Below, one piece after another: positions 501 to 51,814 of a DNA stretch of 64,000 nt. The position numbers and the translations under genes were made by a program. This stretch comes from Oopsacas minuta. Its lineage: Eukaryota; Animalia; Porifera. The DNA lies in the NCBI GenBank assembly GCA_024704765.1, contig JAKMXF010000033.1:1-64000 (forward strand), written 5' to 3'. The notes beneath the pieces were generated by a model, which did no database searches, had not been told where the DNA came from, and saw only the letters and a list, made by a program, of their open reading frames with translations. Positions within the stretch are counted from its first letter, which is position 1. Every line of letters starts with the position of its first letter.

Positions 501-677
501 TAATTATCTTATATTACGTATATGAGTACATGCTTCACTATATCATAATTATATGAACATTTAACTATTAATCTAGCACATAAATCCTACATTAAATTCC
601 TTATTTTATTTACAAATATCTAATTCCATGAAAAGTTAAAACATTCACAACTCATATCAAAATATATATACATTTCT

Positions 678-1845
678 TTACAAAGTTTTATCATGATTCT
701 GCAGTTGGCCTTGCTCCGGCTATAAATATTAGAGAAATAAATAGTTCGTAAGAATTTAAAATCAGCTGATATTACTCACTGGCTGGCTAGAAATAGCTAG
801 AATACTGCTGAGCTGTTCTGGCGCCTTGTCCATATTCAGTGTACAGAATTGCTTAACAGCTGATAGCAGATACTCTACTCTTTCTACATCTCTCTCACTT
901 AACTGTAGACTAGTCTTCAGTCCGTCATTCTTAAATATATTAATTATAAATTAGAATAATAACAGCTATAAATCTACAAACCTCCTTAACTAGTCTAACA
1001 TTATCTATCTTCAGCTGTCCTATCGAGCTCAGCGCGTCGTTTAACTTCTCTCTAAGAGAGCTGTCACTGGGATTGAGGGTCGCGATCGCAGAAGGGCTGT
1101 AGGGGAGAGGAACCTTTGTGGGAGTCAGCCTGGCGGTTGATAGAATATCGGGAGTTCTTGAAGGAGTAGTAGAAGAAGGTCTGGCGATGATTGCCTTCTC
1201 TAACATTGATAAACAATAATAAATAAATATTTTAAGCAATAAGATTGTTATATTACCTCTCATCTCCTTAGGGTTATATCCAGCAGGCCATTCAGTAAAA
1301 TTAGCGTCGTAAAAGACTTTAAACCATTGAATAAATTCAAAATTTTCCATAAAATGTCCTTTAACAAGTTTTTCTACAGGAACAGTCTAAAGTAAATAAA
1401 CAAGTAAATATATTTTCAAAATATATATAAATTTAATATTTACTTTTGTAACTTGCAAATCCTTAAATGCTTTCTGCAATATTTTGAAGTTTTCGATGTA
1501 TTGGTGCTCTGAGTTTGCATTCCATCTGACTAACTTTAGCGATATCGAATCTACAAATCAAATATCTTTATCAAAATATCTCAAACTTGTAAACTGATTG
1601 GCTGACAAACCTGGAAAGAGTACGTGTATAAATTGGCAGTAAGCAGCTCCTAAAATAGAATTAATTCTTATAAATAATTGTAAATAATTATAATCAGATG
1701 TTAGCTAACCTGAACAAAGCTCATCAATCTTATTAAGATTCATCTTAAGGGAGTCATTCACCCAGGAGATATACTCTGATCGGCCAGTAAGGGTTGTGTT
1801 AGGTTTAATTAGATTAGTAGGAGGAGGATTTACTGCTGTTGTCAT
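678..1845 (-). CDS. MAPRE1: EB1/MAPRE-family microtubule plus-end protein (multi-exon, divergent C-terminus)
   Basis: Spliced CH domain: [35 protein letters not shown]|[12 protein letters not shown]|..[20 protein letters not shown]|..[27 protein letters not shown] coiled coil follows. The last exon and stop (678) are less certain. Confidence 0.85.
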
Positions 1846-39224: not shown

Positions 39225-40586
<1,362 letters not shown>

Positions 40587-42147: not shown

Positions 42148-43539
<1,392 letters not shown>

Positions 43540-43824: not shown

Positions 43825-46334
<2,510 letters not shown>

Positions 46335-46504
46335 TATGCTAATTGTATGAGATAATATGATAGGTCAGAGGCGTTATAACACTGAGGTAGGTATTGTAGG
46401 ATTAATTATTGGTTTAGCTTATATTGTAAGAAGTGGATAATAGTACTTATAATGACTTCAGAGATAATACGTGTATGTGTGTGTATGCGTAATTAATGAA
46501 GTAG

Positions 46505-49427
46505 TTAAGTAGCAGATTCAATGGATGAATCCTTATCATCTAGCAGCTGCTGATACAGCTGTACGAGCTCTAGAGCTGAGTCCAGCTGTCCTTGGAGAGA
46601 AGAGTTCTTATCCTTCAATTCAGAGTTCTCTAAGAATAGCTAGATGGATAGAAAATGTGATAACTATGTTATGAGACTGATAACACAGATGTTCTTAGAG
46701 GAGAGGACTGTGACATTTGCCCCCTAGGGAACAAGGAAAGCACTGGATAGTTTACGCGGGAATTAGAGCTTCTACTCAAATATTTAACACATGTAATACT
46801 AACTTCTTCATTCTTAGCAAGAGTTTCTTTCAGAGCTTTTCTCCTCTCCTCTGCTAGAATCCTAAAATAGTTCTCACCAGGTTCTAAATACAAACAATAA
46901 TAAATATTGTCCTGTCAAATACACAGACTATACATAGCACAAGGCAGACCCTCTAAATGTCTAATTAGAGAGACGAATCTCCGATGGATTTATAACTCAG
47001 TAACTATCTTACATGCATATTATAGAGTTAACTAATATTGTAATATGAAACTTAGGTGTTAGGAGGATAATTAGTCTAACAAAGAGTACAGATAACTACA
47101 CCCTGTATACTCTACATCCGGCATAGGTGTTAACTGAATTAACAGGGTATAATTGAATAAATGAGCTATACAACAATAACAACAATAATACTAATAAAAG
47201 TATTGAATACATAAACCAATGAAACAAGTAATAGAATAACCAAAAAACACAAATGCACTCCCATGCTTCTCAACTAGCATCGGAGGTATCAGTTGATTGA
47301 AATAAGCAGCTGAGTAACACACAAAAGTGATTATGCCAGCTGATATCCTGTTGTAATGAGGACTGAGTATCTCTCCGTATAACCACCAGCATAATGATCC
47401 CCACCCTAACGCCATTGAGAACTCAAATATAGCATTTAGGGGGAGGGGAGCATATAGGAGGGTTGTGCATAGGGCGGAATGTGGACCTGTATGGGAGCAC
47501 TTTATGACCGTTACAGAGAGATGGAAACATATACCTAACAGAAGGTTACACACCACTTGTATAAATGTAGTCACCATAAGTAATAGCTTCCATCTAACCT
47601 TGTCAATAATAAACAAGAATACAATACTTCCGAGAAGTAGAGAGAGCGCAGAGAATAGAGCTAGCACTTTAGGATTCATACTAACACCTGATTCTATTGT
47701 GTGTACATAGAAAGCAGACAGGAATATATATCCAGAGCTAACTTTAAATATCTGTACGGTACAACAGATCAATAACGGTCTAATAACAGGCCATACGAGA
47801 TAGCTAGCGACCTCCTTCCTCAGGTTAAAGTCTCCTGTACGGACTGACTGAGATATGTCTAGAGATACGCAATCCTTGCTAGAGTGGAAGTAGTCTATAG
47901 CTTGCTGAGACTTGTCTAATCTCCCCTTTAAACGGAGCCATCTGGGACTCTCTGGGAGTATCAATATGTTTGCTACCATGAATGCTGTCATAAACATGTA
48001 AAGGAGTGCTAGATACCTATATCCTATCCAGATACCTAACAGATAGCTGAAGGAGAGTCCCAGACCAATACCTATGTTAAAGAAAGAACCGTAATACTTC
48101 CTGAGATGTAGAGGAGTTATTTCTGCATTATAGATAGGTGACAATGATAGTCCCATTCCACAGTATAACCCTAGCAACGCACGGCCAATTATCATAGAAG
48201 AGGAGTCGTGAGCTAATACCAATAGCATACCGCCTGACATACCGAATACGGAGAAGAATATGAGGACAGATTTTATCCCCAACCATTCACCCAGAGGACC
48301 AGCTATTAGCGAACCTGTAAACGCACCAAGATACGTAGTAGACGCGAACACAGGGTAAATTCCAATCGTCATCAGTCCGTTGTTAAGGAGAGTATCTTCA
48401 ATTGGAGAGGAATACGAATCGATGTAGAGTGTAACCAGAAAGCTCGCGGCTGTAATGATACAAGCATGGAGAACACGGACTTTCTTAATGAAGACTAGCA
48501 TATTTAAAAATAGACATTTAGTATTTCATATATGTATACCAATGTGTAAATAACCACGTGTTTTCAGCTATTGTTTATAAGACATGGGAGCTTAATTCGA
48601 GTAAATTGTTGTTTCCATATTGTCGCTATTGTTAATGAGATATCTTATGGTATAAATCAGACATGAGGATATATCCTTTCTTGCTAGAGCAGTTGCTGTG
48701 TTAAGAGGCTTCTAAATTGTCCTAGGAGACATCAGGTTGCTCTCAAACTCAATTTTACCATTTATACATTGTATAATAATACATACAGTTAACTCCTGTT
48801 ATATCTAACACGGAAATATAGAAATACCCGCTTATATCAAAGTAATTATTACCGTCCCTTGAGCTTGGATATAACAGGAGTTGTCACTCAGAAACTAACC
48901 TTCCTGAGTAAGAAAAGCAATGACATCATCACTAGAAGAGGTTGGGTTGTCAGCTGATATCTTATCTTTAAGAGTGTTACCTGATTGGTTAGATTTAATC
49001 CTGTCATCACTACTCTTAACTGGAGTTACAGGAGAGCTATTTTTCGAATTGTTTCTATTTTTAGAATCAGGCCTTAAGCTAAGTCCTTGAGAACCAGCTG
49101 ATCCAATATTAGGAGACACATTCTAGTAGAAATAATATAATTACTGGTATAGTACCACATGGAACTGTAACTATCTGTATATATAATTAGCCGTATATCT
49201 ACCTTCCTCACCTCCTTATCATTGAGAGGGTCGAGAGACCGGTTAGACTTGTCAGTAACCTCCAGGACAAATTCCAGGTTCTCTTCATCTCCCTTACGAA
49301 CAGTCAGAACCTTCCCTTTACCTCCAGGACTCTGTCCTCCTTCCTTACTGCCCTTACTAGTAAGATAAGATTTGATATTACTCTCTCTTACATTCAGCTG
49401 TCTCCTACGTCTTGCTAAGCTAGACAT
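46505..49427 (-). CDS. GMNN: Geminin-family coiled-coil protein (4 exons, 2-kb intron)
   Basis: N-terminal D-box-like RRQLNV. The donor GAAG|GTTAGT (48899) and acceptor TTTAG|AA (46884) are both phase 1 and give IAFLTQEEPGENYFRILAEERRKALKETLAKNEE|LFLENSELK.., matching the geminin coiled-coil entry (human [25 protein letters not shown]). Confidence 0.8.
47191..48501 (-). CDS. MFS sugar-porter family transporter (GLUT6/8 or Tret1-like), intronless, nested in a geminin intron
   Basis: 436 aa with ~12 hydrophobic segments, IIGRALLG, PIYNAEIT, PESPRWL, IDKVRWK and GWG..W..YGEI. Confidence 0.88.
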   Translation of the reverse strand: MLVFIKKVRVLHACIITAASFLVTLYIDSYSSPIEDTLLNNGLMTIGIYPVFASTTYLGAFTGSLIAGPLGEWLGIKSVLIFFSVFGMSGGMLLVLAHDSSSMIIGRALLGLYCGMGLSLSPIYNAEITPLHLRKYYGSFFNIGIGLGLSFSYLLGIWIGYRYLALLYMFMTAFMVANILILPESPRWLRLKGRLDKSQQAIDYFHSSKDCVSLDISQSVRTGDFNLRKEVASYLVWPVIRPLLICCTVQIFKVSSGYIFLSAFYVHTIESGVSMNPKVLALFSALSLLLGSIVFLFIIDKVRWKLLLMVTTFIQVVCNLLLGICFHLSVTVIKCSHTGPHSALCTTLLYAPLPLNAIFEFSMALGWGSLCWWLYGEILSPHYNRISAGIITFVCYSAAYFNQLIPPMLVEKHGSAFVFFGYSITCFIGLCIQYFY

Positions 49428-49692
49428 TACCTAAACACTATAATTAAAATAGTCAGAGGATATACACCTCCTACACCCCATGGTACCTGTGTTTATGGTT
49501 ATAAGGACCTGACCGATACACTCTACCCCGTATGACGTCTGCGAAACATAATAAACTGAATTATCTATCTAATTATAGAACATAAATAAAATAGCAATCA
49601 AAATAGATACAACTAACTAACAAACAAATGGTTTATGCATAAAAATATTAAAATCAAGATATAGGAATACAACATAGTTACGGTTGGTTACG

Positions 49693-51814
<2,122 letters not shown>

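Follow-up and report, generated by a model that had tools for sequence, protein, structure and literature searches.

A predicted same-strand nest in the glass sponge Oopsacas minuta: an intronless sugar-porter-family gene in an intron of a geminin-like host, and the fusion of the two in the public annotation

Introduction

Does the public gene model LOD99_13893 (KAI6660305.1, 635 aa) of Oopsacas minuta describe one protein, or has a gene lying inside the intron of another been written into its host? Nested genes and single-exon genes abound in glass sponges, and in Aphrocallistes vastus 2432 nested genes, or 12.4% of all genes, have been listed, compared with just 83 in O. minuta (PMC10282587). 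Glassin is a documented example, its one exon lying within a second gene in each of the two species, and one nested gene of A. vastus appears as an exon of another gene in the O. minuta annotation (PMC10282587). Low counts of nested genes in some genomes have been attributed to prediction programs that disallow nesting, with AUGUSTUS named in the case of two placozoan genomes (PMC10282587). The O. minuta annotation was produced with Braker 1.9 and Augustus 3.2.3, using mapped transcriptome reads (PMC10280926).

LOD99_13893 lies in the window analyzed here, a stretch of 64,000 nucleotides at the start of contig JAKMXF010000033.1. The assembly to which it belongs comprises 61,460,524 bases in 365 contigs. 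In the model, most of an uninterrupted transporter reading frame is spliced between the exons of a geminin-like gene. An original prediction, made from the letters of the window, had instead proposed that the transporter is a gene of its own, nested on the same strand in a geminin intron and possibly inserted there as a retrocopy. We have analyzed the exon structure of the host, the identity and relatives of both proteins, and the sequences that separate them.

Results

The host exons join in one predicted reading frame

The host is encoded on the minus strand by four exons. Exon 1 (49212–49427) opens with an ATG at 49427 and holds 72 codons, followed by the donor GTGAGG. Exon 2 (48900–49122) is a Ser/Asn-rich, low-complexity segment of 223 nt that ends in phase 1 at the donor GTTAGT; read past this donor, its frame meets a stop one codon later (..QEG*). 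Exon 3 (46804–46883; 80 nt) follows an acceptor of sequence ...TTGTATTTAG, is entered in phase 1, and encodes the start of the coiled coil (PGENYFRILAEERRKALKETLAKNEE). Exon 4 (46505–46639) continues the coiled coil for 44 codons up to the stop TAA at 46507–46505. Together the exons sum to 654 nt, that is, 217 codons plus the stop, and all three donors carry a G at position +5. Exon 3 lacks an ATG in its frame, which is closed by a stop just upstream; an upstream exon is therefore needed. The claim that the two exon blocks join in frame only across a 2016-bp GT–AG intron (46884–48899), the coiled-coil exons having no start of their own, thus agrees with coordinates, phases, and splice sites alike. 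LOD99_13893 joins the identical four exons with identical outer boundaries. On these features, the four exons are predicted to make up one geminin-like reading frame of 217 codons.

The host is geminin-like in its coiled coil

Searched alone, exon 3 matched the Pfam Geminin profile (PF07412) with 22.5 bits (E = 1e-4) at profile positions 107–131, which is borderline relative to the curated cut-off of 22.2 bits. Within LOD99_13893 this segment reached 22.1 bits, and in a six-frame search of the genome, where it was the best PF07412 locus, 18.7 bits. The top four matches of exon 3 in the PDB were all geminin (E = 0.019–0.14), with a gapless alignment to residues 94–118 of the human protein. The host exons were searched singly, apart from exons 3 and 4, which were examined together as residues 565–635 of LOD99_13893; for these, the top three matches in the ESM Atlas were Geminin clusters with scores of 0.85–0.88. 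Neither exon 1 nor exon 2 matched any entry in Pfam or the PDB, exon 4 alone gave no meaningful match in either, and a word search with the exon 1 reading frame was blank, which says little.

The proposed identification of the host as geminin thus holds for the coiled coil of exon 3, with its 26 residues, and does not extend to exons 1, 2, and 4, which have no recognizable relatives. The host looks like a geminin, an identity that rests on this one 26-residue exon, with the PDB and the ESM Atlas concurring. It shares the gapless start of the coiled coil with geminin (human GMNN; structures 1UII, 2ZXX, 2WVR, and 4BRY), and its ~217 residues compare with a 209-residue chain in structure 2WVR. 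An RxxL that may correspond to the geminin destruction box lies near the N-terminus: RRQL, a minimal destruction-box-like motif, occupies residues 8–11 of exon 1, although a four-residue motif easily matches by chance. In the joined protein the coiled coil begins at about residue 147, which fits position ~106 of the 197-position Geminin profile. Similarity to geminin is recognizable over about 26–38 residues only, and the N-terminal 146 and last 44 residues have no detectable counterpart in geminin. The host also lacks the long C-terminal extension of MCIDAS and GMNC.

The only other PF07412 match in the genome, on contig C255, was rejected as spurious, the protein being a DUF2046 coiled-coil protein. 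It lies ~2 kb from a paralog of the transporter, and at first sight the two resembled a duplicated host–guest pair. The locus of LOD99_13893 probably holds the only geminin-family gene of the sponge.

The intron contains a complete transporter gene

Inside host intron 2, and on the host strand, lies an uninterrupted reading frame of 436 codons (48501–47191), as had been predicted. It matches the Pfam Sugar_tr profile (PF00083) with an E-value of 8.8e-39 (134.1 bits; cut-off 22.3) over residues 51–435 and profile positions 50–435 of 452, and MFS_1 with an E-value of 3.8e-16; residues 10–30 form the hydrophobic TM1. At 38% G+C, a reading frame of this length with such a Sugar_tr score far exceeds what chance would produce. 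The start and stop positions are common to nine aligned homologs. The orthologs P0002 (436 aa) and P0003 (435 aa), as well as all paralogs, start within 1–3 residues of the start of the inner frame and end at the same tyrosine, and both groups consist of stand-alone proteins of 435–447 residues. These comparisons support a complete, stand-alone gene whose start and stop are its own and conserved.

The closest solved structures are those of GlcP, GLUT3, GLUT4, STP, and GLUT1, and the PESPRW motif is present after TM6. In an alignment to the GLUT3 chain 5c65_A, Q280, Q281, and N286 are replaced by K253, V254, and I259, respectively, N315 by Leu, and Q159 by Asn, and the equivalents of E378 and W386 are kept. 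Q280, Q281, N286, and N315 are residues that coordinate the hexose, for which GLUT1 and GLUT3 use QQ and N in TM7, N in TM8, and E and W in TM10. The full-length Sugar_tr match is common to the inner protein, the SLC2/GLUT family, the plant ERD6-like proteins, and bacterial GlcP. However, identity to the GLUTs and ERD6-like proteins is only ~25–27%, motif A (GRR) is degenerate (GIK), and the inner protein lacks cytoplasmic tails. We therefore file it as a member of the MFS sugar-porter family (GLUT/ERD6-like) rather than as a demonstrated glucose carrier. The name given to its paralogs by NCBI is 'Sugar transporter ERD6-like 6'.

The flanks and the neighborhood

At 2016 bp, the host intron is about six times the mean O. 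minuta intron of 341 bp (PMC10280926). The transporter frame lies 398 bp from its donor and 307 bp from its acceptor. No canonical AATAAA was found downstream of the frame, the only similar signal being TATAAA at 46994. The upstream flank contains, 16 nt past the donor of exon 2, a MITE-like dispersed element of ~100 bp (48783–48883) with 18-nt terminal inverted repeats. At least 40 copies with 78–95% identity were scored in the genome, drawn from 577 first-look candidates. The element folds as a hairpin (z = −2.8), and an Rfam scan of positions 45000–51000 gave no match. The two flanks as a whole are each unique in the genome, and they are neither a segmental duplicate nor transposon cargo.

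The geminin-like gene stands in a tightly packed same-strand row, between a tyrosine kinase gene and a catalase gene, with spacers of 170–265 bp between neighboring genes. When contigs of other assemblies were matched by size, the close transporter orthologs had no contig in common with the orthologs of the neighboring PARN gene. For the more distant P0004/P0033 lineage, contigs of 570,989 and 299,536 bp matched those of PARN orthologs, again by size. An unrelated transporter paralog, P0026, also size-matches the contig of a PARN ortholog, which weakens this contig comparison.

Origin of the transporter gene and alternative gene structures

The lack of introns had been taken to suggest a retrocopy insertion. 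Insertion into a geminin intron that was once small would suit an intronless gene that fills most of an unusually large intron, the other two introns of the host being merely 89 and 164 bp. However, the transporter family has 59 matches in the O. minuta genome, and the full-length members that were scored are all uninterrupted reading frames, so that no intron-bearing parent is evident; being single-exon is also the condition of ~60% of O. minuta transcripts (PMC10282587). Neither a run of at least six A downstream of the frame nor a target-site duplication or other direct repeat flanking it was found, and the flanks are, as noted, unique sequence. The closest O. minuta paralog is only 48% identical, whereas orthologs in other assemblies are 69–72% identical. 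In the tree, the inner gene forms an ortholog clade with P0002, P0003, P0005, and P0006 (support 100/100), and well-supported nodes split it from the O. minuta paralogs, each of which has orthologs of its own. The step from intronless to retrocopy is thus not borne out, and we regard such an origin as highly improbable. More probably the gene has long belonged to a large sponge-specific family of transporters that are intronless throughout, and it may have entered the intron by an ancient insertion of some kind.

Two other gene structures compete with nesting. According to LOD99_13893 itself, the locus encodes one fusion protein with the transporter frame as an internal exon. The model keeps its frame from end to end, its prediction drew on RNA-seq hints, and the dinucleotides that it uses exist: an acceptor AG at 48496–48495, inside transporter codons 2–3, and a donor GT at 47240–47239, 16 codons before the transporter stop. 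This path nevertheless removes the conserved transporter methionine and the conserved last helix. The 16 C-terminal residues lost are conserved like the rest (12 of 16 identical to P0002, compared with 72% overall), and a shared tyrosine is the last residue of all the homologs, which are proteins standing alone. The donor is weak (GTTATT), without the +5 G of the geminin donors, and the product would make little structural sense, since ~11.5 membrane helices would split a nuclear coiled-coil licensing factor. Programs that bar nesting reportedly undercount nested genes (PMC10282587), so that a fused model would be a plausible outcome of the annotation. We consider a true fusion very improbable; the chimeric path, with its AG and GT in frame, may occur as a minor isoform. 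Alternatively, exons 1–2 and 3–4 could be separate units, so that three same-strand genes stand in tandem without nesting: one orphan gene made of the N-terminal exons, then the transporter gene, then a short gene for the coiled coil whose first exon has escaped detection. For exons 1 and 2, the searches indeed revealed no relative, geminin included, neighboring genes on this strand lie just 170–265 bp apart, and the 307-bp flank contains four tiny ATG-to-GT segments that are phase-compatible with exon 3. Against this, these alternative first exons would be just 2–9 codons long with poor donors, whereas exon 2 supplies exactly the phase 1 entry that startless exon 3 needs, through canonical sites. 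Moreover, a joined product of 217 residues would fit geminin in size and, by the place of its coiled coil, the Geminin profile, it would carry RRQL near the N-terminus as in the geminin destruction box, and LOD99_13893 likewise connects these exons. We consider a tandem arrangement unlikely, if less so than a fusion.

Discussion

Nesting of the transporter gene on the host strand, with its reading frame (48501–47191) inside intron 2 of the geminin-like gene (48899–46884), is confirmed at the level of gene prediction. In our assessment the two genes are an unexceptional nested pair such as the compact O. minuta genome would be expected to contain, with an independent intronless transporter gene in intron 2 of a geminin-like gene (probability roughly 0.8). 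The host would be a four-exon geminin-like protein with a disordered N-terminal half containing the RxxL and a C-terminal coiled coil. Its pre-mRNA would be transcribed through the inner gene, after which the whole intron would be spliced out. The transporter would be transcribed from a promoter of its own within the 398 bp upstream of its frame and end within the 307 bp downstream; each of these flanks exceeds the spacers between neighboring genes. LOD99_13893 is then most simply seen as a prediction artefact, in which the transporter frame has been threaded into the geminin-like gene as an internal exon.

The locus resembles the glass-sponge nests described previously, in which one intron of a host with several exons wholly encloses a single-exon guest, in a compact hexactinellid genome (PMC10282587). 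Mishandling in the O. minuta annotation likewise has a precedent; here it takes the form of a three-part in-frame chimera. Neither genome paper mentions this pairing of a geminin-like host with a sugar-porter guest (PMC10282587, PMC10280926). Among the nested genes of humans and flies, single-exon guests are frequent and same-strand guests a sizeable minority (PMC3192792), whereas the sponge locus has far shorter spacers. In humans, 41% of nested guests are single-exon genes (PMC3192792). Most nested genes had been said to be antisense, which in humans applies to ~63% of them; the rarity argument was overstated, as this leaves ~37% on the same strand (PMC3192792) and 12.4% of A. vastus genes are nested (PMC10282587). 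That such nesting is frequent in glass sponges was already known, and the locus adds no new genome organization or mechanism.

It had also been suggested that 3' processing of the inner gene would compete with host splicing and that the arrangement could so couple a cell-cycle licensing inhibitor to transporter expression. Minigene tests have documented transcriptional interference, intron retention, and cryptic polyadenylation for nested genes (PMC3192792). One may speculate that the same-strand nesting is functional, with the 3'-end signals of the transporter truncating geminin pre-mRNA after exon 2, and that for this reason the arrangement is conserved across glass sponges, a proposal that we consider very improbable. 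If true, truncation would yield a 148-residue fragment with the destruction-box-like motif and without the coiled coil, and the dosage of geminin would be tied reciprocally to the expression of the transporter in proliferating as opposed to differentiated cells of the sponge.

The main news is an annotation correction: two genes appear to have been wrongly fused, and LOD99_13893 should be split into a geminin-like gene of ~217 residues and a 436-residue MFS transporter gene. The chimera conceals what is probably the sole geminin-family gene of the sponge, which is relevant because MCIDAS and GMNC were reported absent in the O. minuta genome paper (PMC10280926). The locus also illustrates why only 83 nested genes are listed for O. 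minuta, compared with 2432 in A. vastus (PMC10282587).

Exon–intron structure of the locus

The window covers the first 64 kb of the Oopsacas minuta contig C33. On its minus strand, the geminin-like host gene reads as four exons. Exon 1 (49427–49212) opens with an ATG at 49427, comprises 72 codons, and ends at the donor GTGAGG, while exon 2 (49122–48900; 223 nt) leaves a codon split after its first base at the donor GTTAGT. The first two bases of exon 3 (46883–46804; 80 nt), which is preceded by TTGTATTTAG, finish this split codon, and exon 4 (46639–46505) ends with a TAA. The exons add up to 654 nt (217 codons and a stop codon), with intervening introns of 89, 2016, and 164 bp. Reading exon 2 beyond its donor leads to a stop after one codon. 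Exon 3 contains no in-frame ATG and has an in-frame stop just upstream, and is therefore unable to start a protein. The original prediction had placed a 2016-bp intron (46884–48899) between the geminin exons and, within it, a transporter ORF of 436 codons on the same strand; both were recovered with every coordinate intact, the ORF spanning 48501–47191 and lying 398 bp from the host donor and 307 bp from the host acceptor. The intron also contains a MITE-like element (48783–48883, ~100 bp) whose terminal inverted repeats are 18 nt long; it follows the exon 2 donor at a distance of 16 nt. From 577 first-look candidates in the genome, at least 40 copies, dispersed over many contigs, were scored at 78–95% identity.

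The geminin gene shares its strand with both neighbors, a tyrosine-kinase gene upstream and a catalase gene downstream. The spacers are 265 bp from the tyrosine-kinase stop to the geminin ATG (49428–49692) and 170 bp from the geminin stop to the catalase ATG (46335–46504), far below the published genome average of ~2 kb. The catalase and tyrosine-kinase introns carry runs of GTTT/CAAA-type short repeats (45728–46098 and 50064–50198), which read as CLFVCLFV... in ORF translation. Elsewhere in the window, two intronless alpha-tubulin-like genes of 452 aa each (39225–40583, minus strand, and 42181–43539, plus strand) stand head to head ~1.6 kb apart; their proteins agree at 449 of 452 positions, which points to a recent inverted duplication or to gene conversion.

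The inner transporter gene

The inner ORF matches the Pfam family Sugar_tr (PF00083) with 134 bits (E = 8.8e-39) over residues 51–435, and MFS_1 as well, and its closest solved structures are bacterial GlcP, human GLUT3, GLUT4, and GLUT1, and plant STP10. In an alignment with GLUT3, the equivalents of E378 and W386 and the PESPRW motif are retained, whereas Q280, Q281, N286, and N315 are replaced by K253, V254, I259, and Leu; in GLUT3, all six residues coordinate the hexose. The earlier label "GLUT-like" is thus fair for the family but does not extend to these four positions, and because they are altered we file the protein, from its sequence, as a member of the sugar-porter family rather than as a demonstrated glucose carrier. 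The ORF and its paralogs form a large sponge-specific family with Lys/Val where TM7 of the GLUTs has Gln-Gln, and the substrate may therefore not be a hexose. The inner protein has 59 matches in the O. minuta genome, and on contig C311 seven or more copies stand in tandem (paralogs at, for example, 141509–155051).

The closest database protein, LOD99_13893 (KAI6660305.1; 635 aa), presents the locus differently, as a single protein in which geminin exons 1–2 are followed by residues 3–420 of the transporter ORF and then by geminin exons 3–4. Splice sites for such a product exist, namely an AG inside ORF codons 2–3 and a GT (GTTATT) 16 codons ahead of the ORF stop. However, the orthologs P0002 (436 aa, 72% identical) and P0003 (435 aa, 69% identical), from other assemblies, are stand-alone proteins, as are all paralogs; the homologs share their start point to within one to three residues, and every one of them has the same tyrosine as its last residue. 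Moreover, 12 of the 16 residues treated as intron by the public model are identical in P0002, a conservation matching that of the rest of the protein. The inner ORF is an independent gene, and LOD99_13893 is, judged by these comparisons, a chimera of two genes. Low nested-gene counts in some genomes have been ascribed to a disabled predictor option, AUGUSTUS being named for two placozoan genomes, and only 83 nested genes are listed for O. minuta versus 2432 for A. vastus (PMC10282587). The O. minuta gene models were made with Braker 1.9 and Augustus 3.2.3, and the same disabled option may account for the fused model.

Identity of the host gene

Each host exon was searched separately. Exon 3 alone (26 residues) scored 22.5 bits against a gathering score of 22.2 for Pfam Geminin, covering profile positions 107–131, and its top four PDB matches are all geminin, aligning without gaps to human residues 94–118, where the coiled coil begins. 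For residues 565–635 of LOD99_13893, which correspond to exons 3 and 4, the best ESM Atlas matches were three Geminin clusters (0.85–0.88), a lead only. In a six-frame PF07412 scan of the whole O. minuta genome (61,460,524 bases, 365 contigs), the host locus ranked first. The sole other match was rejected: it falls in a 415-aa DUF2046 (H4-like coiled-coil) gene (C255:260432–263599, ORF 586–1833, minus strand), whose Geminin match is weak and spurious. The transporter's closest paralog is ~2 kb away from this DUF2046 gene.

The host can be recognized as geminin-like by its coiled-coil exon only; exons 1, 2, and 4, each searched including against Pfam and PDB, have no detectable relatives. For exons 1 and 2 this is not unexpected, given the disordered N-terminal half of geminin. 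The predicted linkage of the two halves draws on the splice logic, the size of the predicted protein (217 aa, its coiled coil starting around residue 147), the presence of an RRQL motif (residues 8–11), and the public gene model.

Origin of the inner gene

The lack of introns had been taken to suggest a retrocopy. However, the full-length family matches in the genome are uninterrupted ORFs of ~437–478 codons, several in tandem arrays, and of the 16,340 transcripts of O. minuta, 9872 consist of a single exon (PMC10282587), so that intronlessness is the rule here and no mark of retroposition. Neither an A-run of six or more downstream of the ORF nor a direct repeat bracketing the gene was found, both flanks are unique sequence in a genome search, and the closest paralog is only 48% identical. 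In a maximum-likelihood tree of the ORF and 28 retrieved homologs (P0002–P0029, LOD99_13893 being left out), the window protein clusters with P0002, P0003, P0005, and P0006 with support of 100/100, and the O. minuta paralogs P0011, P0014, and P0018 are each placed elsewhere beside their own orthologs; the inner gene is therefore older than the species split. Identity levels suggest that the ENA ortholog proteins come from other glass sponges. The proposed retrocopy origin is not supported.

Expression and comparison with known nested genes

We consider it probable, at roughly four chances in five, that the transporter gene is nested in the geminin intron. Its own promoter and 3′ end would lie inside the 398-bp and 307-bp flanks, both longer than the spacers to the neighboring genes, and the host polymerase would transcribe through it before the whole intron is removed. 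Among candidate poly(A) signals there is just one, a TATAAA variant at position 46994. Human minigene tests have documented that nesting can lead to interference, intron retention, and premature polyadenylation (PMC3192792), and all three are possible at the sponge locus; the proposed regulatory coupling of geminin and transporter is speculation.

The argument from rarity, that most nested genes are antisense, is not supported by published figures. Human nested genes are ~63% antisense and ~37% same-strand, and 41% are single-exon (PMC3192792), making a same-strand intronless guest a common variety. Glass sponges are also known for their nested genes: these make up 12.4% of all genes in A. vastus, "many of which are conserved", and glassin is a single-exon nested gene in both A. 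vastus and O. minuta (PMC10282587). The sugar transporter in the geminin intron is a fresh instance of this already known nesting, and the practical value of the analysis is that one chimeric public gene model is corrected and the geminin-like gene of the sponge is recovered.
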